Below, one piece after another: positions 6,154 through 53,598 of a stretch of DNA of 64,000 nt. This DNA is from Penicillus capitatus (lineage: Eukaryota > Plantae > Chlorophyta). The position numbers and the translations under genes were made by a program. How positions within the stretch are numbered: the first letter of the stretch is position 1; each line of letters starts with the position of its first letter. Below the pieces are notes generated by a model, which saw nothing but the letters and a program-made list of their open reading frames with translations, did no database searches and was not told the origin of the DNA. The stretch is taken from the NCBI GenBank assembly GCA_965649825.1, contig OZ287694.1, positions 1,859,197 through 1,923,196 of the forward strand, given 5' to 3'.

Positions 6154-8627
6154 ATGATGCAGCTGCGTGACGGAGTGCACGGTCGGTTCCAAAAGACAGT
6201 GATAATGACTTCGCGAACGCATTTCCATCTTTTAAGTATCATTCGACATTCCTTTTTCGCAACCACTTTGCGATGGGTTCAGTATTTTCGAGAACGGATG
6301 AAAACGCTGTCAGGGAGAGAGACGCCAACGACTTCGTCAACCTGGCTCTCGCTTCGATGGTTGAGATGCAACCTCCACGAAACGTTGTTGAACCGCCGCT
6401 GGAATGGAAGTCGGAAGACGTAAACCGGTGAGCAGCAGCCCTTGCACGGTTCGACCTGTCACGGCGGGTTTGTCTGACGAACAGGCTCATCGCTGAGCAC
6501 GGAATGGATTTTGCCTATGCCATGGACGAAAACTTTCACCCTGTTTTCTGGGATGCCATTAAGAAAGGTCAATACGACTGTGCAAACATGCTGCTTCATT
6601 ACCCAAGGTCCGAAGGATGCGAAGAGACATTTCGAAGACGTGGTGGTGATCTGCTGTTGTGGGCAATCGAGAACGATACATACGAGAGTGTCAGCTTCAT
6701 TCTGGAAAAACTCTTGGAGAAACACGTTACTGTCGGCGAAACCCAAAAGCTCCTATCAACACATCTGTGCACCATTGGCGAACGACGTCCCGAAATGCTG
6801 GCGGATCTCCTCAAGAACGACAAGTTCACCATCGAATACGCCAGATTTCGAGTACCGAAGGCTGTTTTTGACATCAACAGCAAGATTCCAAAAACCATGA
6901 TCACAAGGACAATACCGGCATCGTTGAAATGGGAAGTGATCGACGGCGAACGGGGAAAGGGTTTATGGATCAAGCACTGGGAAGAAGAGGGTCACTCAAT
7001 CGACAGCACCTCAGATGCGCAAACCTCAGTGATTGCAAAGATCTTCTTCATTGACTGTCCAGTGCATCTACTCCGCAACGACAATACTATGGGGCAGCAC
7101 CTCTGCGAATACCTCAACAATCTAAGCATGCCAGTGGAAGCTTTTGAATCTGAAACATTGAAGAAGTTTATTGACCACTGGTTTCAAGTTTTTCGCCCTC
7201 TCTATCAAGTCCTCCGCATCCAGGATATCGTCGCCACTTTGATCTTTACAATCTTCTCCCTTACGTTTGGACCTTCAAATGAGATCGGAAAGTTCTATTC
7301 CCTGACTTGGCCCTACATGTTATCTGTTTCCGCCTCGCTGCGTGCTGTTGGAGCTTATCATCTCGGTTCTTGTCGAAGGTCAGCAACCACTCGCCTGCTT
7401 GTTCTATCAGCTAATGTCTGAGATGAATGGGTGTAGGTTCATCCTCTGTTTGATTGAATGGACGCTGTATTATCTGCTTGTTTTTAGCAGCATCAGAGTT
7501 CATCACTACAAATACTGCGCCTTTTTGATATCTCTTATCTGCATCCTTCAATGGATCTCGGTATTTACCACATCGACCTGTGTCTCCCACTGAATCTGTT
7601 TGTGCACCCTAGATGTTTTTCTCGTGTCGGCCTTTTAAACGAATTGGGACGTTTATTTCGATGGTGAATTCAGTCATATCAGACTCCTGGCGTTTTCTGC
7701 TGTTAGTGACTCTGTTCATCGTCGGGTATTCGTCAGCATTCGTGGCGATCTTTAAGAATGGGTCTATGGGAGACGACGGAGAAAACTTCAACTCTTTTCC
7801 ACGTGCCATTGAAACCCTTTTCTACGCCTGTATTGGGAACTTCGAAGTGGAGGTACGACGTCCTTATTAACTTCTACTATGTCCGTGATGTTGGATCCGA
7901 TATGGTGATGCAGATGTTTCGTTCATTAAACAGCTTTCTTGCGTTTTGGGCCACTTTCCTGTTTGCTTCATTCATCTACCTTCTACCGATCGTACTGATC
8001 AGTGTGTTGATCGCCATTGTGCAAGATGTTTACGACAGAGTTCGGTCAAAAGAGAAAGCGGAACTGCGAAAACTCCGACTCCAGATAATTGCCAGATTTC
8101 AGTCTGCGAATGTTTTTGACACAGGAACATGGTAAGCCATAAAAGCATCATCGGAATCTGAGCTCACCGTTAATGTTTGATGGCACAGCAGCAATCCTAT
8201 CAAGTGGTTTTTTAGCTTTTGGTTCCGGGGTTGTTATCGATGCCTTCGACCATGGCAACGCGCAAGAAGACCTAGTGAAGTCATTGCAAATGAATTGAAG
8301 GGTGTCTACTTCCATTTTCTGATTCCTGAGATCAATGTACTGGAATCGCATAAAGTTGAATGGAAGGGAAAACTGGTGGCAATGGAAAGAACCATCAAGT
8401 CTGAAGGTCAGAAAGTCGAGAGAAGTTTGAAGGAGAAACTCGAACTGGCAGACAAGAAGATGGATGAATTGACAGCCCAATGTTCGAAGCTTGATAAGGA
8501 AACAACAGAAAGCAGATTAGAGGAGGAAAAATGGAGGTGTCACGTGAAGGAGAGAATGGACAGATTGGAGTCTGCCATGGACCGAATGCTTCAAAAACTG
8601 GATGCGAATGGTTTATCTTCCGGTTGA
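6154..8627 (+). CDS. TRP-like cation channel A (ankyrin-like repeats + 6 TM + pore loop + coiled coil); 5' end uncertain
   Basis: Inferred GT-AG introns 6428-6484, 7379-7436, 7561-7612, 7853-7913, 8132-8188 join ORFs 6504, 7342, 7613, 7758 and 8295. Ankyrin-like PVFWDAIKKGQYDCANMLL; pore segment FNSFPRAIETLFYACIGNFE; S6 LISVLIAIVQDVYDRV; C-terminal coiled coil. Confidence 0.75.
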
Positions 8628-14205: not shown

Positions 14206-17200
14206 ATGCAGTCCGAAGCTTTGGTCGAAGAAACGACGGCTGGTGGACCGTCCGCATCGGGCGATGTCGTTCGACCCGGCAAGAGCGACTCGCACGTCAA
14301 AGAACTTGACAACCCGAAGCTCCTGCGCACAGTCGCCAAAAAATACGGCGTAGAGAGCACGAAGTTACTGGTGGCGGCGTATAACGCAACGACGGTTAAG
14401 GATGAGCGTGGAGTTTTGCTTCATTGGCTCCGCAGATACGACGAATGGAAAGACGACTGCCTCAAACCGAAACACGTGCTTAGATATGCAGAACTAGCCA
14501 AAGTCGCCCACGTCTCCGAACAAGATGCCACGGTTCTGAGAAACCTGGTCTATAACTTCGGTTCCCTGATCCGTCCTAACGAATTTCTTGACGAGGACGT
14601 GGCAAAGGCTATGCTCAGTGCGCTCACATGGGTTGAATCTAGCGTCTATGATGACACCTCTCGATTGGCTGATCTGGGGTTAGACCTCTTGCTCAGCCTG
14701 TCCTCCAGACCCAGACTCACAAGACAAAACTTTCTTAAATACGAAGCAAACTTTCTCTGCATCCATCAAGTCTTTTTTCTCTTGCAAACCATCGGTCGTG
14801 GTCACTTGCTTGAGGAAGAGAAGAAAAGGCTTCGTAGAATTGTGGCACAGAAAAAGGAAGAGATGGAGTTATCCATTCTATATTACCCGGTGTCCTTTCA
14901 CTTTGAGTCAATTCAGCAAGCTGTCGAGCGCTTAGAAATCCAAGACACCCCATCAAGTCTCAGAAAAGCGAAAAGATATGCTGCATCTGGACTCTATGGC
15001 ACGATGCATGTCTTCCACTTGCTCAGACAACTGACCGGCGGCGATGTCGATCCTACATCAATAGAATATGCATACAGAAGAGGTCGAGCGGCACTTGCCA
15101 ACGCGGGAGTGTCAGAGAGGGAGTGGTATGATATACTCCAGATTCTAACGGCGGCCAGAATCCGCGCGCTTAAAGAAGAGAGAAAATGCGAACTTGTTGT
15201 ACTAGCGTACGACGCGGCGATGGAAGGGCAACGCAAAACCACTAGGGAAAAAGAGCAAAAAGCCTTAAGATATGGCATCCTCCAAGAAATGAGGCTTTTG
15301 GCAAGTGATAAGGACTTTTGTCAAGATGGCCGCAAGAAAGCAATGGCGAAGCTGGTCGAATTAACGACAAGTGCAGTAATCTCCGAGAGCTGGATCCATG
15401 ATGCAGACATCCTTGTTGCGATTTTAGACGCACTGCACGTAATCCACTCGATAGGCGAACAAAATGAAAATATAGGCGATGCTCTCCGAAGCATACAACG
15501 ATCATGCGACGAACGTACGAAAGGGACGTTAAAAGTTTGGCTCGATGGCAATACCATAGAAGAGAAGCTTCAACACCAGGAACATGCGGATAACGAGTAT
15601 GAAGATCCGTTCGACAAGATAGGTGCATCCGTTGGATACTTGCATCCGTCTACGATTCGTTCTAATATCGAAGAGCTCAAGAGAACGTACCTGCACGACA
15701 ACTTTGCTACAGTGAGCGCCATTGCTATTGTTTCGCCAAGACATGAAAGTTGTGTCCGTGTTGAAGGTGCCTTCCTTGTTTGCATCTGAAGTCCGTGGGC
15801 ACGTGAAGCATATGGAGCATCATGTTGTCGCGTACGAAGAAATTGTCGAAAAAAGGAGTATTGAAAGAAAAGAAAAACAACGTAAAGGAGACGGGGATGG
15901 AACGGAGGCAGAGAGCTCCACGATGCAGAAAAGAGATGACCCAAAAGAATACCGCGAGCAAAAGAGAAAGGTCACAACCCCCATTTCAATAGAAGACTTG
16001 TTCAAACCGAGATCGTTAAAAGCGGGGGTCGGCAAGAGCGATATCCGAAAAGTGCTTCTATATGGAAATCCCGGTTCGGGGAAGACTTGCCTCAGCAAAG
16101 CCATTGCTTACAGATGGGCATTGGGAAAAACGTTGCAGGAGTTTAAAGCCATCTACGTGGTCCCTGTAAGACGTCTAAATGTCGCTAAAGCCAAAGGGGC
16201 ACGAGGAGAAGGGCTTACGGAAGTGATCGCACACATGTGTTTTGAGCAAAAGGAAAGCGATACTGAATTTGAAGACTTGAAGACTCAAGTTAACGACGAT
16301 TTCGATATGTCTAGCACATTGCTAGTTTTTGACGGATTGGACGAGGCCGATGACGACACAAGAGAACTCCTTTCTAAGGTCGAGAAGGATGAATGCAGAC
16401 TTCTGATACTTACACGACCATACAACCTGCAAGGGATACGAACCAGAGTAGATTTCGAGTTCGAGTGCTTGGGATTCAATGACCAACAACTCAGAAACTA
16501 CATAAACAAAGAACTGCAGCAAGATGGAGCTTCGAGACTCATCCATTCTTTGCAAGAAAATCGGGGTATGTGGGAAGCCGCACACACTCCGGTGACGGCG
16601 TACATTCTCTGCACTTTGTCGAAAGAACGTGGAACTTCTATTGAGAATCGAGGGAAAAGGACGAGCATGTTTCAGATCTATGTCGACATGACAGATTTTG
16701 TATGGAAGAGGTTCAAAGAAAAGGCCGACGCCAGAACGGCGGACAAGAGTGTCGTTTTCGAAGATCTGGAGAAGATCGCTTTCGAAGCTCTTAAGAAAGG
16801 ACAAATACTCATCGAAGAGAGTATAGTTGAGCATTATACAACATCCACAAACACGACGGAAATCTTTAGGAAAAGCGGATTCCTCCTACTCGTTTTGGAG
16901 GGAAAACAATATCAGTTTCCACATCTCACCTTTCAAGAGTATTTCGCCGGAGAATACATTGCAAGAAACTTAATACAAAAAGGATCGGAGGAAGAGACGA
17001 AGGTACTCGATTTTATTCAAGAAGAGAAGTATAATGAAAAGCATGCTTTGACGCTATCCTTCGCAATGCACGCATTCGCGAGAAAACGGAGCAAACATGA
17101 GTTGAAAGAGATGCTTTCGATTGTCGATCAACAACCCGTTGAGGTTCTCGGAATTCAACACTTTTTCTTGAGAATGCGAGTCCTCGAAGCAATATTGGAA

Positions 17201-19855
17201 GAGGCGGAAGCTGCCGATTTGAAGACTCTCGAGAGAGACGAACAAGCAATCGAGATCGCCGAAAGTGCCCGCCGACTTCTAAAAGGAACGATTGACAACA
17301 TTCTAGTCTGCGAAATTGTAGTCGAGGCATTCGACAAATGCTTTCGCGTTTTGGAACACTTTCCTATAATACTCAATGACGCCATTGATGGGACGAAGAC
17401 ACTATTAGCAAGTTCAAGATACTTAACATGGAACGAAAGAGCCAGAGTTGATGCTATGCTCAAGCTAGCAAGGCATTCTCCGAAGCATATTGGTGACATT
17501 GGATCGTTCTTACGACTAAATGCCAAAGTCAAAGATCGGCAACGGAACACCATTGGCTCGTTCCTGCAACGGAACACCATTGGCTCGTTCCTGCAACGGA
17601 ACACCATTGGCTCGTTCCTGCAACGGAACACCATTGGCTCGTTCCTGCAACGGAACACCATTGGCTCGTTCCTGCAACGGAACACCATTGGCTCGTTCCT
17701 GCAACGGAACACCATTGGCTCGTTCCTGCAACGGAACACCATTGGCTCGTTCCTGCAACGGAACACCATTGGATCGTTCCTGCAACGGAACACCATTGGA
17801 TCGTTCCTGCAACGGAACACCATTGGATCGTTCCTGCAACGGAACACCATTGGATCGTTCCTGCAACGGAACACCATTGGCTCGTTCCTGCAACGGAACA
17901 CCATTGGCTCGTTCCTGCAACGGAACACCATTGGCTCGTTCCTGCAACGGAACACCATTGGATCGTTCCTGCAACGGAACACCAAAATCAAAGAGCGGCA
18001 CAGCAAAGAAGATGGCACAGCAAGGTTGCTAGATGTTGTAAGGAAGATACCGCAGATCGCGGATAGCCTGCTACCGATGCTTCAAGATATGTGCACCGAA
18101 GAAGACAGTAATGTGCGTAGTAGTGCGATGGAGGCCATCGGCAGCATCGCTAAGGCGGCACCGCACATCTCCAGCGATTTGCTACCGATGCTTCAAGAAG
18201 GGTTCACCGACGAAGACAGTAATGTGCGCATGAGTGCGATGGAGGCCATCGGCAGCATCGCTAAGGCGGCAGCGCACATCTCCAGCGATTTGCTACCAAT
18301 GATTCAAGAAGGCTTCACCGACGAAGCCACTAACGTGCGCATGAGTGCGATGGAGGCCATCGGCAGCATCGCTGAGTCGGCGCCGCACATCTCAGGCCAT
18401 TTGCTAACGATGCTTCAAAAAGGATACGACGAGAATGCCTCTGACGTGCGCGTGAGTGCCATGTTTGCGATTTGCCGCATTGCCAAGGCGGCACCGCAGA
18501 TCGCTGATAGCCTGCTACCGATGCTTCAAAAAGAGTGCATCAACGGAGACTTTAACGTACGCATAAGTGCGATGGAGGCCGTCGGCAGCATCGCTATGGC
18601 AGCGCCGCAGCTCGCGAGCTACTTGCTGCCAGAGCTCCAGAAAGGGTGTGACGACCCGGACTTTGACGTGCGCATGAGTACAATGTCAGCAATCGGCAGA
18701 ATCGCTATGGCGGCACCGCAGCTCGCGAGCAACTTGCTGCCAGAGCTCCAGAAAGGGTGTGACGACCCGGACTTCCACGTGCGACGGAGAGCGATGTTGG
18801 CCATTCGCCGAATCGTTAAGGCGGCTCCGCAGCTCGCAGGCAACGTGCTGCCGAACCTTCCAAAAGGGTGTAGCGACAAAGTCTTTGACGTGCGTTGGAG
18901 AGCAATGCAGGCTATCGGCAGCATCGCTGAGGCGGCGCCACACTTCGGGGGCTACCTAATAGCGATGCTTCAGAAAGGGTGCAGCGACAAAGCTTCCGTC
19001 GTGCGCAAGAGTGCGATGCCGGCCATCAGTGACGTCGCCAAAGCGGCGCCGCAGCTGGCGGTCGGTTTGCTGTCGATGCTTCAGAAGGGGTGTATCGACA
19101 AAGCCTCTGTCGTGCGAGAAAACGCGATATTGGCTATCGGTGACATCGCTTTGGCCGCGCCGCAGCTCGTAGCCGACGTGCTTCCGGTGCTTCAGAAAGG
19201 GTGCATCAACGACCCGGCCTCCGTAGTGCGCAAGAATGCTATATTGGCTGTCGGCAGCATCGCTGAGGTGGCGCCACATCTTGGGGGCTACCTGTTGGCA
19301 GTGCTTCAGGAAGGGTGTGATGACAAAGACTTTGGCGTGCGTCAGAGGGCGATGTCGGCCATCCGCCACATTGTTGAGTCGGGGCCGCACCTTGCCGGCG
19401 TCGTGTTGCCGGTGTTCCAGAAAGGATGCAGTGATGAAGACGTTCGCGTGCGCGAGAATGCAATGGAGGCTATCAGCAGTATCGCTGAGGCGGCGCCGCA
19501 CCTCGCAGGCGACGTGCTGCTAGTACTTCAAAAAGGGTGCAACGACGAAGATTTCGGCGTACACTCGGCCGCCAAGAAGACACTAAACAGTATCAACGTT
19601 GATAAGTTTGTTTTTTCGACCATCTTCTTTACTCCTACGTATGAAGAGTGCTTTCTGTTACTTCTTATGAAAAATGCATTTACACTCGACTCTCCTTTCG
19701 GTTATGAAAAAGTTTCCCTCATTTTACACACGACTTCTTCCAAACAAATTGGTCGGTGGAACAAGAAGAATCTTGATGGATTTTTGTGGAGGTTAAGAAA
19801 ACAGGCTGATGAGCGCTTTTCTGGGTTGTCAAGCTATCTTAGAACAAAATACTAG
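14206..19855 (+). CDS. NLR-like STAND ATPase 2: orphan N-terminal domain + NACHT + 27-nt repeat insert + 14 HEAT repeats; join(14206..15711,15767..19855)
   Basis: ATG 14206 aligns with the start of paralog 1; 55-nt GT-AG intron 15712-15766; Walker A GNPGSGKT at 16064; Walker B LLVFDGLDE; frame open to the TAG at 19855. Confidence 0.88.
17540..17983 (+). repeat. In-frame minisatellite: 16.4 x 27 nt encoding (NTIGSFLQR)n
   Basis: Unit caacggaacaccattgg(c/a)tcgttcctg. The synonymous C/A variant runs 8C-4A-3C-1A. Absent from paralog 1. Confidence 0.97.
18047..19600 (+). repeat. Coding tandem array: 14 x ~111 nt HEAT-like units
   Basis: Fourteen units counted in the translation; units 2/3 and 6/7 are near-identical neighbours. 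Confidence 0.9.
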
Positions 19856-22328: not shown

Positions 22329-22860
22329 AACATAAAGCTGTCTTCTTTAGACGCCCGTATATCTAAAATCTGCAATTTATGCGGATTTCTTCGTATACAT
22401 ACACACGCGGTTCGGCACCTGGACCGAATTTTGAGTTCCCTCGTTTCTGAGCGTAACGATCGATACCATCAACAGGAATGGTATCTTCTGATTCATGTCC
22501 ATGATTTAGGCAATCCGATTTCGGAGAAACGCATTCGATCGCGGTTCAACGTACGAACGACCACCGGAGAGCTCAATCCATCTTCACATAACTCTCTACG
22601 AAGTGCAGAAGACATGGATGCTGCGCTCTTACACAGTTCTGAGACCGACATGTGCGGCTCTCGCAATCGCTGCCGTATCTGGCAGACTTCTTCGCTCTTT
22701 AAGCAGTTGCCATAAAGATGGAAACATCTTAACATGGAAGCATCGACAGGTTACTGACAAGACAAACTGCTACAGGTCCAAAAGAGAAGCAGGTATGTTT
22801 CAAATGCCCGGATGCTGTCCGTCATGGATCAGGAAGGACGACTCGGTGGTGAAGACCTGT

Positions 22861-23907
22861 TTAGGTCATCGGGTACATATCGGACGCCTTCTCATCCACT
22901 ACTTCATCGTCTGCTTCTGAAGTGTACTTGAGATGACCGGAGAAGATTGTAATCGGACCATACTTCCCAACAGCTTCCTGGACTTTAAAATGCGAGCCCG
23001 GATAGACGTCGACCTTTACTCTTTCCGAACGACTCTGATGAAACGCGCTTCGTTCCACCGTCGACCAATCGAAATGAATACTGCTGCTGATCTTGAGCTG
23101 AAAAATTCTTCCGAAACCTGCTGACGCACTTACAGACGTAGAGAAAGACCCCGCTCTCGTCGACTCTCTTTCCAGATTCGTGCCTCTTGCGTATTCCAAT
23201 TCGACTCCTATTATCGATTTGCCAGCCTTGTTGTCAAACTCCGTGATGGTGACCCACTTATCAGACGCTTCCCATTCTTTGTCGCCTTCTTTCCACCCGA
23301 CAAATCGATTGCGGCCTCGAGTCTTTGATTTCCAGCTACCGCAGTAGAGCACACTGTTGGTCCAAAGGAAAATAAAATGGTACGGCGCCCTGGCTCTGCG
23401 AATCATGAGATTGTCGTTATTCTCGTCGAGATAAAGATGGAAACGTTCCCAGGTGTGGATCTCTCCCCTTCCTTCGACATCGCCTTCGTCTTCGCAACAC
23501 AACCATTGCTGAGTTTTGGTGTTTTTGATAGCAAAGACTCCATCGTCGACTATATAAAGTTCAAATCGATGCGCCTCTTCACAATTCTCTCCGTCGGCGC
23601 GGAACCTTCCGCTTCCCGAACGCGCATCGTGACGCACAAACTTCAAGTTTGTGCCGAGGAGGGCGATGTACCGCGTTCCGACACTGACGCCGTCATTTCC
23701 CGGCCCCACTTGAAAACGCCACAGCTGGTCGGTGTTCGTCACTCGGACGGTAGAAGGATTCTTAACGCTTCGCGTCGGACGCCATAGCTGGTTGGGGTTC
23801 GTCGCTTGGACGGTAGAAGTATTCTTGACACTTCTTGCAGAACGGACCTCGGTTGCGACTGCCGTTTCAGTAAACAGCAGCAACAATGCGACAGATGTGA
23901 AGGACAT
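22861..23907 (-). CDS. Secreted protein: signal peptide + fascin-like beta-trefoil + Ser/Thr-rich beta domain (putative aerolysin/ETX-MTX2-type pore-forming module)
   Basis: Intronless ORF. MSFTSVALLLLFTETAVA resembles a signal peptide. Fascin-like units IALLGTNLKFV..., FAIKNTKTQQWLCCE...WERF. The C-terminus has alternating S/T beta strands (SFSTSVSASAGFG...ISSSIHFDWST). The pore-former call is inference from the sequence pattern. Confidence 0.65.
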   Translation of the reverse strand: MSFTSVALLLLFTETAVATEVRSARSVKNTSTVQATNPNQLWRPTRSVKNPSTVRVTNTDQLWRFQVGPGNDGVSVGTRYIALLGTNLKFVRHDARSGSGRFRADGENCEEAHRFELYIVDDGVFAIKNTKTQQWLCCEDEGDVEGRGEIHTWERFHLYLDENNDNLMIRRARAPYHFIFLWTNSVLYCGSWKSKTRGRNRFVGWKEGDKEWEASDKWVTITEFDNKAGKSIIGVELEYARGTNLERESTRAGSFSTSVSASAGFGRIFQLKISSSIHFDWSTVERSAFHQSRSERVKVDVYPGSHFKVQEAVGKYGPITIFSGHLKYTSEADDEVVDEKASDMYPMT

Positions 23908-24414
23908 CTCCGAAGCGGGCGGCAGGAAATCAAGGGCCTGCACAAGACAGTCACATCGCCATGGAAATCTTGGCGACAAACAGTGACAGTTGAATCAGGA
24001 TTCATGCCTTCTGTCGTGCGAAAGACACGGCGAGTCGAACTAACGTGCGTAGTGGAAACGAAACAAAACGGAAACACGCAAAGAATTGATTAAATTACAC
24101 AGCCCGGCCGTTTCCCGGGATGCTATCGCCCGTCACTTTAAACAATGAACGAACGCGCAAGGCGCGTCTGAGCCTCTTACTTCTTCGGTGTGTCGAAACT
24201 CGTATGGCGTAGAACTTCCTTCGTCTTCCGTCCTCGCGTTGGTATGGAGATCGTCGCAGAGTCTTCTCACGTCTCCTCGAGTCCATCCCGTCCACTGTAG
24301 CTGGTTCACGCGAAAAAAAACAAAAAAGGCAAAAGGCAAAAGGCAAAAGGTAGAGAAAGATGATGAATGGATGCAGCAACCGACGCAGTCTTCTGCGTCA
24401 GCAGCTTTAGGGCT

Positions 24415-24477
24415 AGGGTGACTGCTCAGTCGAGTGACCGAACAGTTTCGACGGCGCCACCCGTCTCATCAGACCCC
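24415..24477 (-). ncRNA. Type I hammerhead ribozyme (minus strand)
   Basis: Minus strand reads GGGGU-CUGAUGA-GACGG(GUGGCG)CCGUC-GAA-ACUGUUC(12 nt)GAGCAGU-C/ACCCU: complete core, 5-bp stem II, 7-bp stem III, 5-bp stem I. Predicted GUC cleavage between 24420 and 24419. Confidence 0.9.
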
Positions 24478-24489
24478 TTAAGAGTTTTT

Positions 24490-24568
24490 GCCGATTTAGC
24501 GCTATCCAGTCCCGCCACGAGGAGGCACGGCTCGACGATGCGTTGGCAAACGCACCGCCGTTGGGACC
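24490..24568 (-). ncRNA. HDV-like self-cleaving ribozyme, minimal P4 (minus strand)
   Basis: P1 GGUCCC/GGGACU with a G.U first pair; J1/2 10-bp hairpin GCGGUGCGUU/AACGCAUCGU; P2 GCCGU/AUCGGC (one bulged U); P3 GCC/GGC; L3 UCCUCGU; J1/4 GG for P1.1; J4/2 CUAA with candidate catalytic C at 24499. P4 is reduced to ~6 nt. Confidence 0.72.
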
Positions 24569-24571
24569 ACA

Positions 24572-24904
24572 TTTTTGGGTGGTAATCACGAAATGAAATG
24601 CCATTCTTTTTGGGTGGTAATCACGAAATGAAATGCCATTCTTTTTGGGTGGTAATCACGAAATGAAATGCCATTCTTTTGGGTGGTAATCACGAAATGA
24701 AATGCCATTCTTTTGGGTGGTAATCACGAAATGAAATGCCATTCTTTTGGGTGGTAATCACGAAATGAAATGCCATTCTTTTGGGTGGTAATCACGAAAT
24801 GAAATGCCATTCTTTTTGGGTGGTAATCACGAAATGAAATGCCATTCTTTTTGGGTGGTAATCACGAAATGAAATGCCATTCTTTTTGGGTGGTAATCAC
24901 GAAA
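24572..24904. repeat. Minisatellite, 9 full + 1 partial copies of a 34-35-nt unit
   Basis: Unit t(4-5)gggtggtaatcacgaaatgaaatgccattc; only the T-run length varies; no spacers. Confidence 0.97.
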
Positions 24905-24921
24905 GTGCCTTGGGTAATCAC

Positions 24922-25497
24922 GAGGATGTCCTTCCTTCCGGGATTCCTCAACCAGGTCGAAGGGAAGGCCCGCCTACGGGAGGCGGCCTCCCACTTCGCC
25001 TTCGGGACTAACGGGTGGGCCCGACGCCGTAGAAGCCGTTCAACAGTCCGCGCCACAACCGTCGCACGATTGCCGCCATCGACGGCAGCGTCTCATGCGC
25101 TGTTTGAAAGGTTCTTCGACGGACAACCGAACGACGAGTTCGACGTAGTGGGACCGGAGCTGCGCAACTGTGGGGGAGTATCTCCCGGAAAGAAGGGCCA
25201 TCCGAGGATGTCCCCCCGATCCGAGATTCCTCAACCAGGTCAAAGCAAAGGCCGCCTACAGGAGACGACCCTTACCCCGCCTTCGGGACTAACGGGTGGG
25301 CCCGACGCCGCAGAAGCCGCTCAACGGCCCCCGCCACAACCGCCGCACGATTGCCGCCGTTCTCGGCAGCGTCTCATGCGCTGTGTGAAGGTCTTCGATA
25401 CTGCAAAACTTCAATATGACGGACAATCGAACGACGCGTTCGACGCATCCGGACTGGAACTGCGCAACTACGGGGGAGTATCTCACGGAAAGAAAGA
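24922..25497. repeat. Diverged tandem duplication, 282-nt period, GC- and hairpin-rich
   Basis: gaggatgtcc starts at 24922 and 25204; shared cgccttcgggactaacgggtgggcccgacgcc, gcagcgtctcatgcgctg and gggggagtatctc.cggaaagaa. Confidence 0.9.
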
Positions 25498-25808
25498 CGA
25501 AAAATGGTGCGCGTCATCACTTATATACCCCTTCAGATGATGTGACAGCGTCACATCGTTTTGTCGCGCAATCAGCCAATCACGACGCGAGTTCAGAGCA
25601 CCAACCGTCGGAAGAAGAAGCAGGGAGGAAGGCGTCGCGTCGGCCGATAGCCAATCACGTTGCAGTATCGGAATATTCGATCTGTCACATCAGATTCTCG
25701 TCGATCCAACCAATCAGCGCGCACCTTTCGATTATCCGACCGTAACGCGACAGGGTCACATCACCATTCAGGTATATAAGGCCCACCACGACGCGCATTT
25801 CGTCTTTT
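25493..25808. promoter_or_regulatory. Bidirectional Pol II-type promoter
   Basis: TATATAA on minus (25521-25527) and on plus (25773-25779). Each is followed in its own direction by gacgcgca(cc)attt(t)tcgtcttt. Three CCAATCA boxes (25576, 25651, 25710) and three gtcacatc motifs (25550, 25684, 25755) lie between them. Confidence 0.65.
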
Positions 25809-26244
25809 GTCGTTAGGGCGGTTCTACTGGTGTGTTCTCGCTTCCGGGTTTCGGCTCGGAACACAGAACGCCAAAAACCGGGCCAGTGCTGCCACGCTAT
25901 AAGCCGCCAACCCAGCCCGTCGGTGTTGCGAGGCGCCCCTTCGGGAGGTGCTGCTGACCATCACCTTCCCGCCGCGGTTGGCGCGTGCAAAGGTCGTTAG
26001 ACGCTGGATTCGGAGTGTCTAAGGCGTGTTGCGAGGCATCACTCAGGTGGCGCTGATGACCTCCACACCTGGCTCCGAACTTTGCGCTCCGCCGCACGCT
26101 TAAGACATACGGCTCCACTGCGCTAATGCCACGCCGCCTTCGGGTGACGCGTCACTGGTTCAGTGGGGAGGGTGGGCTTGGGGTTATCCTAGCCAATCCG
26201 GATCTTTCCGGATCGCGTCGAGGGTTTTGGTGCTTCGACGTGAA
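25790..26244 (+). ncRNA. Putative structured non-coding RNA upstream of the plus-strand hammerheads
   Basis: Nested helices: ggcggttct/agaacgcc (25817-25872), tccgggt-TTCG-gctcgga (25843-25860), cgccaacc/ggttggcg, ttagacgct/agtgtctaa (25997-26022), atccgga/tccggat (26196-26213). Several UUCG tetraloops; no convincing ORF. Confidence 0.45.
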
Positions 26245-26290
26245 GGGGTCTGACGAGACGGGTGGCTCCGTCGAAACCCTTAGGTCTTCT
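26245..26290 (+). ncRNA. Hammerhead ribozyme core with poor stem I (degenerate or partner-dependent)
   Basis: GGGGU-CUGACGA-GACGG(GUGGCU)CCGUC-GAA-ACC(CUUA)GGU-C. Core and stem II are intact, but the sequence after GUC (UUCUG) pairs weakly with GGGGU. Confidence 0.55.
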
Positions 26291-26459
26291 GTTGACGTGT
26301 CGTCCGTACCGCGCGCGCTCGAATTACGCGTTCAATTCTCGCTCTCCGTGTTGGATCTCGGCCGATGTCCAGCGCACGGGTAGATCTGCCGACATCGTCC
26401 GCGGGTCTTTTTCCTCCGCCGATTCGATGTCGCGTTCGTTCGCGCTGCGGCGCGGGAAA

Positions 26460-26526
26460 GGGGTCTGATGAGACGGATGGCGCCGTCGAAACCGCAGAGT
26501 GCTTCGTTGCATTCGGCGGTCACCCC
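26460..26526 (+). ncRNA. Type I hammerhead ribozyme (plus strand)
   Basis: GGGGU-CUGAUGA-GACGG(AUGGCG)CCGUC-GAA-ACCGC...GCGGU-C/ACCCC. Stem III is extended by gagtgc/gcattc and stem I is a perfect 5 bp. Predicted cleavage after C26521. Confidence 0.93.
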
Positions 26527-29291
26527 AGCCAGTCGTTTTTTTCTTTCTGTCTCTTTTTCGCCTATCTATATCTATGTTTCTGCCTACGTGCGTTAACACT
26601 AACTGACCTTTACAGCCGATGGCAAGGCGATCTGCATGTATGTATGTATGTACACATGCTCCCCGCTCGGCTTTAAAGAAGAATTCTTCGCGCTGTGTCT
26701 CTCACTCGTTCGTCCTCCTGCCGTTAAGTGATCTGACCCTAGTTTGTTCAACGTGATGGTAGACTTGGAGGCGACGCATTTTTTTGGTATTGGAAAGTGG
26801 ACCTTTGTACCTACCTAGACCAGAGTGGCAGAGCAGCAGTCCTCTGGATTTCTGATGAGTGGTTCTTAACAGCACATCAACCTTGTCGATCATCAGGACG
26901 CCGACGTTGTGCGACACCGCCGTTGCAACGTATAGCGAGCCCGTGAAGCTTTCGAGTGACCTCATTCTCACAACGTGAACCGGCGATTCTCAAGCTTGCC
27001 GTTGCAACGGCGGACTCCATCGCCCGACCGCTTCATTCGCTCTTGCATCAAGAGAATATCACTCCTCAGCGCTGTCGCCGTCTCCACGTCAAACTACGTT
27101 TTAAACGGAGCGTTCCGTTCTCCTTCAGGTGGGTGGGTGGGTGTCCTGCAAACAGACGTTGGCTATACACAGTGAGTGACCAGAAGCCCGAGCAAATGCA
27201 AGACGGCCCTTGGCCTGTCAAATCAGAAGCGCGCTGTTCTCTCTTTGCTTTCCAGTCGTCACACCACAACAGACAGAACCGGTGGCCATGCTGAGACTGT
27301 CCTGTTTTAACATCCCATCTTCTAGGCGAGACGTTGCGGACCGGAATCGAACTTCTAGGTGCTCTCCCCTGAGCACTGCTGCATTAGGAGTGAAGATCAC
27401 CGGGAGTGTCGCGATATAAACCTATGACATGCATTACCGTTTTGGAGTCCCCGATTCAAGGGACATTGATCGCATCAGAACGCGCCGAAGGACTGAAGGA
27501 AGGTGTTTGTCGACGAACGCATAACACAGCTTTCTGGTGCAAGATCCGACGAGATCGCAGCTGCATGGGTTTATGTCCCACGAGATTCGAAAGGCCGACA
27601 CACTCGGTGTGAAGCTAGCCGCCGCCAATCGAGAACAACGAATTCAAGAACTTCGATTCCTCACTTCCAACGAAACCTCTTTCTTCCCGCCGCCGACCCT
27701 CTTCTGAAGTGTTCCACACTTGGTCGTCGCTCACCGGATTGTTTATTCATATGCCGGCGCTTTCAGATGGAGCAAGATCTGTCACAGCTTCGTGCGACTG
27801 TTGTCCTCGTTCCCGCAGATCATCCCAGTGCGCGTCGTCGCCAGTCATGGTCGCATGGATGCGCCAAACGTGCGAAGTCTACAAGAAGACAAATGAATGA
27901 ATGACTCGGCACGCCGTCGGAATACACGACGTTTAAGTAAGTAACAGGCGAGAACAGTTCATTATCTACGAGAAAAGCTACGCGGAGCGAGCGACTAGTG
28001 CTTTCCCAACTCCGTGCATCGATCGCCCTCAGCAACGTCGTCGCGCCAATGTCCTTTCAGATCGTCCACGTAGCGCCGGTGACACACTAGACGACAGCAA
28101 CTCACCATGTCCGACGAGCCAGACAGAGACTATAAAAATTTACTCCTCTGATGACGATACGAGCAGCTAGCTGGATTCAGACAAGTGAGATTAGAAAACT
28201 CCGTCGCCGCAAAAACACAGACAGATGTTGTGTCAACGTTTCCGATTAGGCAAGGAAGCTTTTGGATGCGCTCGTATCGTGGAAGTAGCAGTTGTGTGTG
28301 CCCTGACGACGATAAGACAGACAGACAGACTTTGGTAGATGCGACCTGAACTTATGCCAAGTGTGGCAGCTTCTGGTTGCGTAAGATTGTCTGTTTCTCG
28401 TGACTGAAGCGTCAGTCAGGTCGTAACAAGGAAGCCTGTCGCGCGGAGTATGAGGCGGTTTTTGATGGAATACAAAGGTTACACAATTGACAACTTTTCA
28501 ATGAACAAAACGGAGCGAAAAGGTTACTTACAATCAACTTGTACAGCAAACAGAAATAAAGTAACTCGTAAGCAAAGAAGCAGAACAATTCTAATCTAAT
28601 CTTCTTCTTCCCCTTTTACTTAACCCTTCAGGTGCGACAGCTCGGACCGTCGTCTAAGCCGCCGTGCGTGGTCGGTCTTGAAGTGAGAGGTGAACGGGAG
28701 AGCCGGTGCGTCATAGGTGTTCTCTGAAAGACTTATGCCAGAATGGATAGAGACATTCACGAAGAGGTCACAGTACTCGGCCAGTCTTCCGAACCCCCCC
28801 AAATGCGTTCGGTAGTTTCTCAAATCTCTCTCCGCGCCTGCTCGAAGAGAACGAACAGCTCTCTAGCCGGTGAGGCAGAGGGAGAGGGGGTTCCACTGTT
28901 AGTTATGACTCTCCCATCCAGTGGGTTTGAAGAGTGGGAGAGAGGACCACTGGCCGAAGAGGAGTCCAGTGGGATCATCGGATAAACGCTGCTGCGTTCT
29001 TTTGCACATTTGCTGTGATTGTTCTGTCGTAAACCGCTCGTTCGGTGACGACTGTTGCCATTGTAGGCTGCTTTCGCATGTTTACACTTTGACAGTTTTC
29101 ACGCTGGTAGATCTGTTCCGTCACCTCCGTTAATGCCCGTCACATTCTCCCCGACACGTGTATGTACGGATAAAAAACCGATCGATAAACGCGCGCGCAA
29201 AGCACGAAGCTATGAAGAACATAGAGTACTATTACATACCATTGTTTCGGTTCGACTCATAAGGATCGAACTCAACTTGACAGTGAAACAA

Positions 29292-30110
29292 CCAGAGCAG
29301 TGAATGCGAATGGAGACGGCCGGTTCGACTTATGGCTGTCGAACCCGTCTTGCCAGAGAAACAGCCAGAGCAGTGAATGCGAATGAAGACAGCCGGTTCG
29401 ACTTATGGCTGTCGAACCCATCTTGCCAGAGAAACAGCCAGGGTCAGCCCCGGCGGAAAAACAGCCGGTTCGACTTATAGAGAGGTCGAACTCTTGTTGC
29501 TCAGACGATGCGTGTGCTTGCCAGAAAAACAGGCCAGGGTCAGCCCCGGCGGAAAAACAGCCGGTTCGACTTATAGAGAGGTCGAACTCTTGTTGCTCAG
29601 ACGATGCGTGTGCTTGCCAGAAAAACATGCCAGGGTCAGCCCCGGCGGAAAAACAGCCGGTTCGACTTATAGAGAGGTCGAACTCTTGTTGCTCAGACGA
29701 TGCGTGTGCTTGCCAGAAAAACAGGCCAGGGTCAGCCCCGGCGGAAAAACAGCCGGTTCGACTTATAGAGAGGTCGAACTCTTGTTGCTCAGACGATGCG
29801 TGTGCTTGCCAGAAAAACAGGCCAGGGTCAGCCCCGGCGGAAAAACAGCCGGTTCGACTTATAGAGAGGTCGAACTCTTGTTGCTCAGACGATGCGTGTG
29901 CTTGCCAGAAAAACATGCCAGGGTCAGCCCCGGCGGAAAAACAGCCGGTTCGACTTATAGAGAGGTCGAACTCTTGTTGCTCAGACGATGCGTGTGCTTG
30001 CCAGAAAAACATGCCAGGGTCAGCCCCGGCGGAAAAACAGCCGGTTCGACTTATAGAGAGGTCGAACTCTTGTTGCTCAGACGATGCGTGTGCTTGCCAG
30101 AAAAACAGGC
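29292..30110. repeat. Compound minisatellite: 2 x 73 nt then 7 x 96 nt, each unit with a GTTCGAC..GTCGAAC hairpin
   Basis: 73-nt period (29292, 29365); 96-nt period from 29438 to 30110; the units differ essentially only at aacaGgcc/aacaTgcc. Confidence 0.96.
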
Positions 30111-30215
30111 CAAGGACAGGACAGAGGACACCGCGCCCATGCAACCAAGGACAGGACAGAGGACACCGCGCCCATGCAACCAAGGACAGGACAGAGGACA
30201 CCGCGCCCATGCAAC
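30111..30215. repeat. 3 x 35-nt tandem repeat
   Basis: caaggacaggacagaggacaccgcgcccatgcaac starts at 30111, 30146 and 30181. Confidence 0.95.
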
Positions 30216-31087
30216 CAATCAGTGTAATAGTATACCTTCTCTTCCGTTGCCCACGACGATCAGAACAATCGAAACCTTGCCTCAATGGGCGCTTTCCAGT
30301 TTCTTCGACATCCCAAAGCAAACGAGACAAACCTGTTCCCTTGGCGATCTAACCGTCCGATCACGCTACCTTTCCCGCATCCCCTACACCAATTCCCAGC
30401 GCCTCCGCACTATACCTACCGCCGCATGCAAACCCCGTGGAGCGAAATAACATACCGTCTAGTCTACCACTCTCCCTTGTGGGCACCAACGTCTTCCTCA
30501 AGCTGACGACGAAGCAGAGCTTCGTGGCGAAACCGACGCAAGAGATTCACGAACCACGGCTCTTGAGAAAAGAATCCACGCAGAACACCCGAAGCGTGCT
30601 CGCAGTGGCAACGGAAAAACAGAAAAGAAAAAACAACAAGCCTACGACACACACCGACAACGGAAAGACAGCGCTGGCGCGGGAAAGAAAAAACCACGTT
30701 TCCTACGAAGACACTCAAGGAAAGAGAAAAACGCGCGTCGAGCCATAGAGATCGCAGAACTCAAGGTCAGCATGCAGTCAACCGAGGTACGTGGCCCCAC
30801 GGCAATCCTCGTTCCCAAGCCGTCATCGCCCCACGCTCTCCACTATTCGCACACCTAGGTCGTCGTGCTTTGGCCTCACCGCATACTCGCCATCCATTTT
30901 CTCTCCTTCATCACATATCACCGGTAAACGCATTAGATCGCCAATTCCTTATCCTCTCATGTTGACCCTTGACGTTATCTTCTCTCCTCACCCGCCTGTC
31001 TCGACAAGATTCCGCCTTCCATATAAAAATGCCCGATACAACCGCTGACGAAACCTAATCCGCACACCGGACCGCTTTAACGGTCAT

Positions 31088-32041
31088 CTACCTTCTCGAC
31101 CTCTTCCGGGAGCCCCCCAGTGAACCCCCTGTCCCCCCGGCAACCTTCCGTTTCGAATCGTTTTCTTTCAACATCTCCATCCGTTCTCTTCGAACCCGCG
31201 TGTCCCGAAGATTGTAGCGGCGCTTTGCATTTCTCTCCCTTGTTAATTCTTCTTCGTACGACGTGTCCCGACGGCGGCGTCTAGAACCGCTGCCCTCAGA
31301 CTCCTCTTTCGTTTCCATGACAACGTCGGGCTGCGCCTCCGGCACCGCGTCCCCTTCTTCGTCCGTGACAACGTCGGGCTGCGCCTCCGGCACCGCGTTC
31401 CCTTCTTCGTCCGCGACAACGTCGGGCTGCGCCTCCGGCACCGCGTCCCCTTCTTCGTCCGCGACAACGTCGGGCTGCGCCTCCGGCACCGCGTCCCCTT
31501 CTTCGTCAATGTCGAGTTCCACGACAACTTCCTCCACCTCCACGCCCACGATATTGTCTTCTCCGTACGTAAGTTCAGTGAGGACGAACAGCATCATGTC
31601 CTTTGCCAATTCGTTCTGTCTTTGGCGAACCTCTGTCGGAGGGGCGCTGAGCTGTGACCTTAGATGTCTTACAAACATGGCAACCCTGAAGAACATAAAT
31701 TCATCGTCGTGGTTGCCAAGTTGAGTTGCCAAAGCATTTCCCAGAACGTTCGCAACGTCAGCCCATGTGCGAATATGCCCTTCTTCGCCTTCATTGGTAT
31801 TCCCGACCAGGAACCGCACCCCCATTTGGCACAAAACGGTCCGAACGGCGGCGAATGCACCCGGTGTCCACGTGTGTAGTGGCCCCACGTCTGCCCCGAA
31901 GATGTCGGCCGCGACCATAAGTCCAAAATGGCTAGAGACCGCTGCGTGAAAAATGTTGTATTGTTCACGCTGAACATCTTGCTGCAAACCGCATAAGACG
32001 TGGTTTGTGAGAACCTGTACTGCCAACGTAAACGAACCCAT
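31088..32041 (-). CDS. Orphan protein with acidic 16-aa repeats and a basic, NLS-like tail
   Basis: Open frame (first ATG 32041). Contains 4 x 48-nt repeats (EEGDAVPEAQPDVVxD, 31319-31507) and the tail RRRRR...KRRYNLR...RKRSRR. Upstream TATA/CCAAT; degenerate paralog at 40759-41839. Confidence 0.6.
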   Translation of the reverse strand: MGSFTLAVQVLTNHVLCGLQQDVQREQYNIFHAAVSSHFGLMVAADIFGADVGPLHTWTPGAFAAVRTVLCQMGVRFLVGNTNEGEEGHIRTWADVANVLGNALATQLGNHDDEFMFFRVAMFVRHLRSQLSAPPTEVRQRQNELAKDMMLFVLTELTYGEDNIVGVEVEEVVVELDIDEEGDAVPEAQPDVVADEEGDAVPEAQPDVVADEEGNAVPEAQPDVVTDEEGDAVPEAQPDVVMETKEESEGSGSRRRRRDTSYEEELTRERNAKRRYNLRDTRVRRERMEMLKENDSKRKVAGGTGGSLGGSRKRSRR

Positions 32042-32342: not shown

Positions 32343-34273
32343 CTGACTCGATGAGGGAGGCGACACCACGGCGGACGGCACAAATGAAGCAAACAAAACG
32401 TTTGGAGTGCATACCAAGTTTAAGGGAGTGTGGCTACTTGTTGATTGAGTCGATTTGTGACCCGACACCCCTGACAACTTACACGTAATGTCCTTGAATC
32501 TCTAACAATTTTGACCTGTGTTCAATACCGAACGTCAACAAGATCCTTCATACTAGCTCCTGAACTTAACAGTTCTGTCACGCAATCGTTTTAAAGGGAT
32601 TGCATAGCTGCCCATGGGGTCCTCAAGTCAAAGAAAGTGGTTCAATCTTCTGACTTTGTAACCGATCTTCAAGGGAAATCATAGTTATGTTGTTGTCCGG
32701 TCCTGCTTTTTCAGATATAAATAATGATTGTGCAACAAAGGGTCATCCATAATACAAAGGAAGAAAAAATGCACCAGACCCAAAGAATTTGAACTGGTAT
32801 CATGTAAGGCAGCGCCGCCGACAACCAAGAAGTCGACAGACTCGTAAATTTCTCAGTTTCCTTAGTCGGTCGGACGTTGAGTGATAGCCAGTCTCTCCTC
32901 CATCTGCCTCTGAAGAGATGCCATCATCGTCTCATTCCTGGTCGCCATTGTTTTAATCTGATCTTCCATTCTCTGCTGTGGCGCGCTGAACTTTTTCCAG
33001 ACCTCGTCTATTCTTCCTGTCACGTAATGCCCTTCCTGGAGGCCTGGTCACCATCGTGGCGTCTGGGGGTCCGGGGGAAGGAATGTCCTCTGGAAGCGGC
33101 GCTACTAGGTCGACACTGGCGTCTTCAGAGCTTCGCTGCGAGCCGTAGATTTCCGCGTTGTCGATGATCCGCTCTGCCCCTCGCTGTTGCAAATCGGAGG
33201 TCTCCGCCTGACGAAATCTGTTAAGGCGGTCTTCGAAGTTAGGGTAGAGAGGCGCGTAGAGAATAGTCGCGCGTTGAACGTTGTGCTCCGCGTCGTGATC
33301 CGCCAGGATGCAGCGAAACAAGAAGTCTTACAACAATCGTAAAGGCAAAAGTCCGTGCATACCCCCCTTTTATACCGCCCTGGTGATGCGACTCCACGAA
33401 GAAGTGAGTCATCGCGCCACCTGAGCCAGAGAAGATCGTCCCAAGACACAGTCGACAAGACATGCAGCGCCCCTGCGCACAGCTGACCCCCACAGAACAA
33501 GACAACGTCACATCGCTCGGCGACACTTCCTTCCCTGTTCCTGCACAACAAGTGTCACTACGGATCTTCTGCTCTTCGAGGGCTCACAGTTTTCTGTCGA
33601 TTCTGTAGTAGAGGGAATTCCGTGTGACAACGATGTTGGCTCGTGCCTTGATTTGCGTTCATTCGCCGTCATCTGTACGCGCTCGTAATCATCGGACAAC
33701 TCGTCACCATCAGATTGAAGATCACGATCATAGGAACGAAAAGGAACACGATGTACAACAGAGATTGCCACACAGACAGGAATTTGTCTTCCGAATAGAA
33801 AGCTTGTGAAGCAAAGAGCAACTCAGTAGGGGAGACACACAGGAGATGCTTACGTCGGCTTCACTGTTCCCAATGGTCGAGAAGAACAGGGCTTCTGCGA
33901 TACGTATGGTGGAATGACAGCCGTGTAGATCCTGGGGAATGTCGTCCAGTTTCCTAAAAAAAGAGTACGGAAGGCCATCGAAAACCAGATGTGGTTGTCA
34001 AGAGCAGAAGTGTGAACGGCACAATGCTGTCTAAGAGATTCGCCATAGGAATGATCAGAGGCCCGAACAACTCAAAGGGTTGGCAGTACTGCAACATCTC
34101 GGTAGTAAAAGGTCAACCCATCGGCACAGTAGAAACAAAAGCTGAAACGGTCTTAACTCGTCCACGCCTTAAAAGGCGTTCGTCGAGCTCGCGCCGAGTC
34201 TTGTGCCGCGTCATCTGAAGAACGTTCAGACAATGATGTTCTGTTTCTTGCGTCTGACAGCGACGGCGCATCA

Positions 34274-48667: not shown

Positions 48668-49007
48668 TGTTGGGAATCGAATGTAAGAGTGGTTCAGACG
48701 ATAGTCGAGTCCTTGCGCGTTGAGACGACGGAAACGCAATCAGATTTGATGCGATACGAACAGGAGTGTTTACAGGGTGAAATGTCGACCTTATATACCC
48801 AGGGTGGTTATGGACTTCCTAACCTTACGTCCTAACAGCTGCGAACTCCTAGTGCATGCAGCATAACCACACCCCTTACGTTATGGGGAAGTTAGGTCGA
48901 GAGCCGACATCCGTCGCGACCGATGGTCGGCGCGCCTGGATGGTTATGTGACGGCTCCACCGCTTCCGGTGGTTACACAGATGACAGTTAAGGGTTCATT
49001 TCCTACA
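48668..49007 (-). repeat. 3' LTR (340 bp)
   Basis: Matches 53599-53938; preceded on minus by the polypurine tract at ~49012-49020. Confidence 0.97.
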
Positions 49008-49113
49008 GTGACTCCTCCTCACTTAACACGTCACGTCCCGACGTTTAAGTGACAGAATGAACGAAAACACACAAGTCAGGTAAGAGGTAGAACCATTGAG
49101 CGTCATGAGAACT

Positions 49114-53544: not shown

Positions 53545-53580
53545 GGCTTGTCAGAGATGATAGAAAACGCTCGACAGTTG

Positions 53581-53596: not shown

Positions 53597-53598
53597 GA

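Follow-up and report, generated by a model that had tools for sequence, protein, structure and literature searches.

We analyzed a 64,000-nucleotide (nt) stretch of Penicillus capitatus DNA, hereafter the window (contig OZ287694.1 of assembly GCA_965649825.1, positions 1,859,197 to 1,923,196 of the forward strand). Its minus strand carries a hepatitis delta virus-like (HDV-like) ribozyme motif at 24568-24490, followed directly by a type I hammerhead motif at 24477-24415. This pair, together with the putative promoter, leader and downstream RNA around it, is the subject of the present analysis (Table 1). A preliminary description of the same DNA had located both motifs, and rereading of the minus strand returned the coordinates and the geometry that it gave. 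P2 of the HDV-like element ends at 24490, which leaves the reported gap of 12 nt to the hammerhead. The two predicted cut sites bound a piece of 149 nt, from 24568 to 24420, as had also been described. In L005, a contig carrying a paralogous unit, the predicted counterpart of this piece is 154 nt long.

Anatomy of the tandem ribozyme motifs

Direct reading of the minus strand from 24640 to 24330 bore out the earlier claim that the hammerhead is complete, with a full core and three helices. Stem I (GGGGU/ACCCU, 5 base pairs (bp)) is open-ended, and every conserved core nucleotide is present (CUGAUGA at 24472-24466, GAA at 24449-24447). Stem II reads GACGG-GUGGCG-CCGUC (5 bp), and stem III consists of 11 bp and opens with A15.1-U16.1 (A24446-U24421). 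The cleavage triplet is GUC and C17 is C24420, in agreement with the rule that H17 is not G. We compared the window with its dinucleotide-preserving shuffles using a permissive type I hammerhead descriptor. Two loci were observed where 0.023 were expected per shuffled window, no shuffle yielded two, and the helices of both real hammerheads were much longer than the descriptor minimum. The hammerhead exceeds chance resemblance. We also considered a box C/D small nucleolar RNA, as CUGAUGA and CUGA, flanked by a terminal stem, resemble C/D boxes, and rejected it: the plus-strand copy lacks the CUGA, and stems II and III form perfect hairpins.

This plus-strand copy emerged from a self-comparison of the window, in which the 35-nt hammerhead core recurred at 26458-26492 (97%) and at 26243-26286 (89%). 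The first recurrence belongs to a second complete hammerhead, which has stem I, core and stem II in common with the minus-strand one and a stem III that differs in sequence yet pairs. Comparison of the two, which are only two independent sequences, revealed two compensatory and four one-sided changes and one A.G mismatch. Pairing was found in 97.5% of cells, versus 27-54% with partners slid. The second recurrence retains the core and stem II; it may be degenerate and is weaker still in L001, the closest copy of the locus. The predicted plus-strand cuts after C26286 and C26521 lie 235 nt apart and would free a retrozyme-sized RNA with ligatable ends. No HDV-like partner was found upstream of the plus-strand hammerhead. 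A metagenome scan with the hammerhead core returned one contig, L004 (JGI Ga0099817_1511750, 357-397), which repeats the 5' half of the window hammerhead: its stem I strand, its core and its stem II, here with the loop GCGGCG. The 3' strand of the window's stem III, CUGAGCAGU, follows some 65 nt further on. Stems I and III of L004 could not be closed, and the contig may represent a disrupted or rearranged relative.

In the HDV-like element, P1, P1.1, P2 and P3 can all form with standard pairs, giving a nested double pseudoknot. At the base of P1, G24568 (G1) pairs with U24508, making the first pair G.U. The candidate catalytic C24499 is the first nucleotide of J4/2, is followed by UAA and is unchanged in L005. 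The preliminary description had called the element complete. The double pseudoknot agrees with this, but there is no P4 helix, its place being occupied by the linker AUAGCG, and P1 has 6 rather than 7 bp. P4-less minimal HDV-like ribozymes have been described (bioRxiv 10.1101/2023.06.13.544163, citing Riccitelli et al. 2014). Considering that members of this subfamily, as well as the elements L014 and L020 presented below, also lack P4, its absence places the window element in the minimal subfamily and not outside the class. The element further has a perfect 12-bp hairpin in J1/2. In large HDV-like ribozymes a J1/2 helix ("P1.2") speeds the ribozyme by pinching P1 and P2 together (PMC4908430).

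Table 1. Positions of the ribozyme motifs and of the features of their putative transcription units in the window
Feature	Positions	Strand	Remarks
HDV-like ribozyme motif	24490-24568	minus	P4-less, with J1/2 helix; predicted cut 5' of G24568
HDV-like P1	24568-24563 with 24513-24508	minus	GGUCCC/GGGACU, 6 bp
HDV-like J1/2 hairpin (P1.2)	24560-24533	minus	perfect 12 bp; flanked by 2 nt (AA) and 1 nt (A)
HDV-like P2	24531-24527 with 24495-24490	minus	GCCG(U)/(A)-CGGC, 4-5 bp
HDV-like P3	24526-24524 with 24516-24514	minus	GCC/GGC, 3 bp
HDV-like L3	24523-24517	minus	UCCUCGU
HDV-like P1.1	24522-24521 with 24507-24506	minus	CC/GG, 2 bp
HDV-like linker where P4 would stand	24505-24500	minus	AUAGCG, 6 nt
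HDV-like J4/2	24499-24496	minus	CUAA; candidate catalytic C24499
Linker between ribozymes	24478-24489	minus	AAAAACUCUUAA, 12 nt; variable, 2 substitutions and a 5-nt insertion in L005
Type I hammerhead motif	24415-24477	minus	predicted cut 3' of C24420; from sequence reading, descriptor and L005 conservation
TATA-like box	25521-25527	minus	UAUAUAA within GGGGUAUAUAAG (25531-25520); putative promoter of ribozyme transcript
CCAAT boxes (three)	25576-25580, 25651-25655, 25710-25714		between the divergent TATA boxes
TATA-like box	25773-25779	plus	UAUAUAA; putative promoter of divergent transcript
Transcript leader	24905-25494	minus	two tandem ~282-nt repeats (25494-25203, 25194-24921), 79% by self-BLAST; aligns with single L005 leader
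Minisatellite	24572-24904	minus	35 nt, 9.6 copies, 99% matches; directly 5' of predicted HDV-like cut; absent from L005
Downstream RNA	23990-24419	minus	~430 nt, predicted 5'-hydroxyl (5'-OH) at A24419; no conserved reading frame
Hairpin	24373-24408	minus	7-bp core GACGCAG/CUGCGUC and outer stem; 12 nt into the predicted hammerhead-released RNA; 88% to L005
Second complete type I hammerhead	26460-26526	plus	predicted cut 3' of C26521; on divergent transcript
Hammerhead-like copy	26245-26290	plus	CUGACGA, GACGG/CCGUC, GAAA, GUC with C17 = 26286; stems I and III 2-3 bp

Conservation of the ribozyme domains and recurrence of the HDV-like core

L005 was found by translating the antisense open reading frame (ORF) that spans the ribozymes and searching with the resulting protein. 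Positions 9856-10453 of L005 align with 23983-24568 of the window at 81% identity, and along the minus strand this identity is unevenly distributed. Upstream of G1, identity falls to 38% over 32 nt, the level of unrelated sequence. The P1 strand (7/7), the HDV core from nt 38 to 79 (42/42; P2, P3, L3, P1', P1.1, linker, C-UAA and P2') and the hammerhead (63/63) are identical, whereas J1/2 matches at 25/30 positions, the linker to the hammerhead at 59%, and the blocks of the downstream RNA at 88, 49, 84, 66 and 75%. Strict conservation is confined to the ribozyme domains, with 112/112 positions invariant against about 26% differing columns in the rest of the unit. On a uniform rate, our arithmetic from the alignment gives a probability of about 1e-15 for no change at the 112 positions. 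Since two invariant blocks enclose a divergent linker, we suggest that they reflect selection rather than a gene-conversion tract, and both motifs look functionally constrained. Two of the J1/2 changes in L005 keep pairing (G.U to G-C and U-A to U.G), and an A80-to-U change directly past P2' adds an A37-U80 pair to P2.

The conserved feature at this point is the start of homology exactly at G1, not the edge of the minisatellite. It had been proposed that the upstream RNA receives a precise HDV-cut end right after this minisatellite. The predicted site does lie 3 nt past the array, but L005 has no minisatellite and the feature is not conserved, so the array is not part of the conserved design. 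Its copy number appears different in L001.

We searched for the HDV-like core in two ways: with the exact 21-mer P3-L3-P3'-P1'-P1.1 against bacterial contigs, and with GCCUCCUCGYGGC-N6-UGGAU, in which P1' is left free, against viral contigs. The 21-mer matched ten bacterial contigs, nine of which are coincidences in GC-rich, protein-coding-looking DNA. The tenth, L014, lies in a metagenome-assembled genome (MAG) of Phycisphaerales (JACKHI010000001.1, 7228-7280, plus strand) and is a compact, complete and P4-less fold (GGUCCC-AG-CGUGAUG-GCC-UCCUCGU-GGC-GGGACU-GG-AUUCGA-CAGA-CAUCACG). Its P1, P3, L3 and P1.1 are those of the window, while its 7-bp P2 is of unrelated sequence. A tRNA-Ile(UAU) gene is found at 7296-7374, 15 nt downstream of the fold.

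The P1'-free pattern returned five viral contigs from IMG/VR (L016-L020), with L020 belonging to a giant-virus MAG. In each of them a P1 strand of perfect complementarity lies 15-16 nt upstream and the first pair is G.U, the strands comprising four distinct sequences (GGGAUUC, GAAGCGC twice, GCUGCAC and GGGAUAG). P2 measures 5-9 bp in each, and C followed by UAA or GAA stands just before P2'. As all five matches fold fully, the core pattern is highly specific for HDV-like folds. A P4 hairpin is present in four of the five; in L020 its place is taken by the linker AUAACG and then CUAA, which resembles AUAGCG-CUAA in the window and AUUCGA-CAGA in L014. Across the six independent elements the candidate catalytic-C segment reads CUAA, CAGA, CGAA and similar. 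P1 (five distinct sequences counting GGUCCC of the window) and P2 covary fully around an identical P3/L3, these elements being only possible homologues of the window element. Four of the five viral loci have tRNA genes, and L019 also lies near RAGATH-16 and RAGATH-36 RNAs.

Closer relatives of the locus are few. The gene downstream of the unit, which encodes a secreted protein of 348 amino acids, has three relatives (L001-L003), all in the ENA metagenome assembly ERZ25074695. L001 reproduces window 33330-22574 at 97-99% and includes the cassette; over 190 nt, the sole change is the loss of 3 nt within P3/L3 (GCCUCCUCG to GCCUCG). The deletion is derived, as the intact L3 is common to the window and L005. 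A repeat of about 510 nt is inserted in the L001 downstream RNA (L001 9310-9819); it is 86% identical to window 33018-33525 and may be a small mobile element. The insertion alongside the L3 deletion suggests that the L001 copy may be decaying. No hammerhead was found in L002 or L003, which encode paralogues of the secreted protein at 56-62%. A six-frame concatenated query for extra copies gave no match, and a HMMER search of representatives gave low-complexity matches only, apart from the L005 protein. Related contigs also encode a eukaryote-type nitrate reductase.

Several observations weigh against an HDV-like ribozyme and a hammerhead acting in tandem. At the gathering score, Rfam reported nothing in the whole window; sub-threshold hammerhead scores were 17.8 bits for RAGATH-1-hammerhead (cut-off 56.3) and 15.7 bits for Hammerhead_3 (cut-off 48.5). 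A permissive HDV-like descriptor found four loci in the window versus 3.55 expected from shuffles, and by this measure the HDV-like fold alone is not beyond chance. The nested optimum from ViennaRNA, in which pseudoknots are not scorable, keeps P1 and the J1/2 hairpin and displaces P2 and P3 with a 6-bp hairpin, GCCGUG/CGUGGC. The deletion in L001 abolishes the HDV fold yet keeps this hairpin. One J1/2 pair is lost in L005 (G.U to A.A). The HDV core does not vary among the three eukaryotic copies and hence offers no internal covariation, these three (window, L001 and L005) are the only copies recovered, and the comparator HDV-like elements are themselves predictions.

Two findings lift the HDV-like element above chance: a diverged paralogue conserves it, and its core recurs unchanged in independent elements whose P1 and P2 covary. 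A stricter descriptor (L3 = YCC..., P1.1 = GG), chosen post hoc, found this locus only, with 0.07 expected. No HDV family of Rfam matched on 176 nt even at E = 10; at the gathering score Rfam also reported none of the six comparator elements (L014 and L016-L020), so that its silence on the window carries little weight. This silence at gathering thresholds would suit a chance resemblance of two non-functional motifs, as would the proneness of HDV-like descriptors to many false positives (bioRxiv 10.1101/2023.06.13.544163). Set against the expectation of 0.023 hammerheads per window, the 112 invariant positions amid about 26% divergence and the full HDV-like folds at all five viral core matches, the probability of such a coincidence is close to nil.

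The same segment could instead consist of conserved ordinary hairpins for protein binding or hammerhead folding, with the hammerhead as the only catalyst. The minimum-free-energy fold gives precisely the hairpins this would need (P1, the 12-bp hairpin and the 6-bp hairpin), and the L001 deletion would merely shorten a loop of the last; the missing Rfam HDV match and the chance-level permissive descriptor fit as well. Yet the unpaired HDV segments (L3, AUAGCG and CUAA) are as invariant as the helices, and conservation begins exactly at the predicted HDV cut. Moreover, the core, the P4-less linker and C-UAA recur in unrelated viral and bacterial contigs with P1 and P2 covarying, where the 6-bp hairpin is impossible. 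We regard a catalytic hammerhead beside inert hairpins as quite improbable, and two ribozymes in tandem as a prediction that is well supported by the comparative evidence.

The putative transcription unit and its neighbors

Upstream of the cassette, the window and L005 share more than the ribozymes. The TATA-like box of the ribozyme transcript has a homologous counterpart in L005, GGGUAUAAAAAC, followed by a homologous leader, and ATTGG/CCAAT boxes stand at the equivalent place. In the window the three CCAAT boxes are flanked by a second, divergent TATA-like box, and 25520-25780 looks like a bidirectional promoter for two ribozyme-bearing transcripts. The cassette would lie about 950 nt into the window transcript and about 380 nt into that of L005.

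Downstream of the hammerhead, the hairpin of the predicted released RNA is followed on the minus strand by a pyrimidine-rich tract (24372-24322), and homology to L005 ends near 23990. A structure of the downstream RNA can form in both the window and L005 with four compensatory pairs, a weak comparison of two sequences only. We tried two identities for this RNA. A small protein was rejected: the 63-codon ORF starting at AUG 24277 has a start in common with L005 but is frame-shifted there, and we consider the RNA non-coding. A telomerase RNA came to mind, as the released RNA would start with the template-like ACCCUAGCCCUAAAG, and was dropped as L005 has CCCUCA at that place and the plus-strand unit differs.

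Past the conserved unit the two loci part. L005 has an independent CRE/TATA promoter, while the window has, 83 nt on, the ATG (23907) of the secreted-protein gene. This protein has no Pfam match, and hints of a beta-trefoil were insignificant. A first impression of a natterin/aerolysin-like identity was unverified and has been dropped. A second copy of the gene runs off the window end (22574-23561 versus 63009-64000), with any cassette of that copy out of view.

Ribozymes in a 5' untranslated region or 5' intron of this gene could adjust how strongly it is expressed, either by cutting off the cap or through competition with splicing, as has been proposed for intronic CPEB3-type and hammerhead ribozymes. 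The ORF does begin about 83 nt past the conserved unit, the interval contains no obvious TATA box, L001 is arranged alike, and past the hammerhead we read a pyrimidine tract and the CAG behind it as similar to a 3' splice site. However, the L005 unit precedes the independent promoter and unrelated sequence rather than a secreted-protein gene. Conservation does not extend to the candidate 5' splice sites of the leader, and several AUGs stand ahead of the ORF. No ribozymes accompany the paralogues in L002 and L003, which also led us to reject a tie between the ribozymes and the secreted-protein gene family. A role of the cassette in expressing this gene is unlikely.

The surroundings include two large NACHT-HEAT (NLR-like) genes on the plus strand (2187-5105 and 15722-19855) with arrays of 111-nt (37-codon) HEAT repeats. 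In the second of these, a perfect minisatellite of 27 nt (17539-17984) lies in frame and encodes about 16 copies of QRNTIGSFL. A Ty3/gypsy retrotransposon at 48668-53898 has an intact 1476-codon gag-pol ORF and long terminal repeats (LTRs) identical at 100% over their first 300 nt, which suggests a recent insertion. The NACHT-HEAT genes and the Ty3/gypsy element mark the window as eukaryotic. Segmental duplications of 75-99% identity link 22574-23561 with 63009-64000 and 6.5-13.9 kilobases (kb) with 54-62.3 kb. Further long minisatellites, with periods of 73, 96, 35 and 48 nt, occupy 29266-30218 and 31319-31507; the 96-nt array is 98% regular and gives spurious long ORFs on both strands.

We also weighed whether the unit is, or stems from, a mobile retroelement, either non-autonomous and retrozyme-like or an HDV-led non-LTR element, whose ribozymes process its RNA with a circle of 149 nt or larger as a transposition intermediate. 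Both classes are known from retroelements: R2 and other elements of the LINE type (long interspersed nuclear elements) carry HDV-like ribozymes at their 5' ends, while Penelope-like elements and retrozymes carry hammerheads (PMC7761336, PMC7229834). The several copies at different loci, the break in homology at G1 and the pair of plus-strand hammerhead sites, separated by 235 nt, would be in keeping with this. On the other hand, the homology to L005 includes the promoter and leader upstream of a variable spacer, which means that the unit does not start at G1. Around it we found no reverse transcriptase, poly(A), target-site duplication, LTR, primer-binding site or polypurine tract, or tandem monomers, and the window's only reverse transcriptase is that of the unrelated Ty3/gypsy element. 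Only three copies were recovered, with no other in the window or at the other loci examined. A mobile element is therefore an improbable explanation.

Proposed action of the cassette and its relation to known ribozymes

HDV-like ribozymes cut at their own 5' edge and type I hammerheads near their own 3' edge, each leaving a 2',3'-cyclic phosphate upstream and a 5'-OH downstream. We think it fairly likely that the locus belongs to a set of paralogous non-coding units, each with a promoter and a self-excising cassette of HDV-like ribozyme and hammerhead that splits the transcript. A TATA/CCAAT promoter would drive each small unit, the HDV-like ribozyme would cut before G24568 and the hammerhead after C24420, and the cassette would thereby remove itself as a 149-nt piece. 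The primary transcript would be split into a capped, non-coding, repeat-rich leader ending in a 2',3'-cyclic phosphate and an uncapped RNA of about 430 nt, with its 5'-OH at A24419, 12 nt before the conserved hairpin. The order, HDV-like element then hammerhead, frees the ends of both neighbors of ribozyme sequence save a 5-nt stem I strand. The purpose may be to define scar-free ends, so that the downstream RNA is uncoupled from a leader that is capped and laden with repeats.

The excised piece itself appears less important. It contains only the two ribozymes and a non-conserved linker, which argues against a selected product; it looks more like a by-product, with a circle still possible. Its predicted ends are of the kind that RtcB-type ligases join, as the preliminary description pointed out, and given this end chemistry such a ligase might circularize it. 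A fuller version of this idea, in which a two-ribozyme "punctuation" cassette cuts polymerase II transcripts and its 149-154-nt piece becomes an RtcB-ligatable minicircle of two ribozyme classes, strikes us as possible but doubtful.

Among known systems, the HDV-like element is closest to the minimal P4-less ribozymes of the drz-Mtgn type and the theta ribozymes of gut phages. Common to these and the window element are the P1/P1.1/P2/P3 double pseudoknot, a G.U cut site, a catalytic C as first nucleotide of J4/2 (a candidate in the window) and a short linker for P4. The P3/L3/P1.1 core and AUAGCG-CUAA of the window are nearly identical to those of the P4-less L020 and L014 elements. A further likeness is that a cut at the 5' edge gives the upstream RNA its 3' end, a role that has been proposed at tRNA trailers and that the window element would share. 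Unlike the minimal ribozymes of phage tRNA clusters, it lies in a eukaryotic, nuclear-type context, has a 12-bp J1/2 helix and a 6-bp P1, and is directly followed by a hammerhead. The stable J1/2 helix joining P1 and P2 is found in large HDV-like ribozymes with P1.2 such as drz-Agam-2 (PMC4908430), but these retain P4.

The window hammerhead resembles the type I hammerheads of eukaryotic repeats, retrozymes and Penelope-like elements in its open stem I, canonical core, GUC triplet and multiple related copies. It differs from the retrozyme and Penelope type in having an 11-bp stem III rather than the 1-3 bp of the dimer-dependent form, in the lack of tandem monomers, pseudo-LTRs or reverse transcriptase, and in its pairing with another ribozyme class. 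In the genomes of bacteria and phages, several classes of self-cleaving ribozyme (twister, hammerhead, pistol, hatchet and RAGATH) also occur in clusters. Like the pair described here, these clusters place different classes close together on one strand, whereas this pair lies in a eukaryotic genome behind a putative TATA/CCAAT promoter. Synthetic cassettes offer a further likeness, in function only: guide RNAs are flanked as hammerhead-RNA-HDV, and RiboJ-type insulators combine a hammerhead with a hairpin. The logic would be the same, with an HDV-type ribozyme setting the upstream 3' end, a hammerhead setting the downstream 5' end and a hairpin after the cut. Those cassettes are engineered, and by this analogy the one in the window may be a natural counterpart.

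What is new about the locus is how known ribozyme kinds are arranged in a eukaryotic genome, and also a combination of structures that is novel for the HDV-like class. To our knowledge, a J1/2 helix combined with the loss of P4 has not been described before. The curated covariance models miss this HDV-like subfamily entirely. Self-cleaving ribozymes are widespread, and we know of few with a demonstrated role beyond rolling-circle replicons, retrotransposon processing and glmS. Here a 5'-edge cutter and a 3'-edge cutter form a complementary back-to-back pair that has stayed invariant amid drift, apparently as a natural part of a eukaryotic non-coding gene. If the predicted cleavage is true, the P4-less HDV-like subfamily would extend from phages and metagenomes to a eukaryotic chromosome, and a J1/2 helix and the loss of P4 would be combinable in one ribozyme. 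The locus would then be a tractable case for the role of ribozyme-made ends (no cap, a 5'-OH and a cyclic phosphate) on nuclear RNA.

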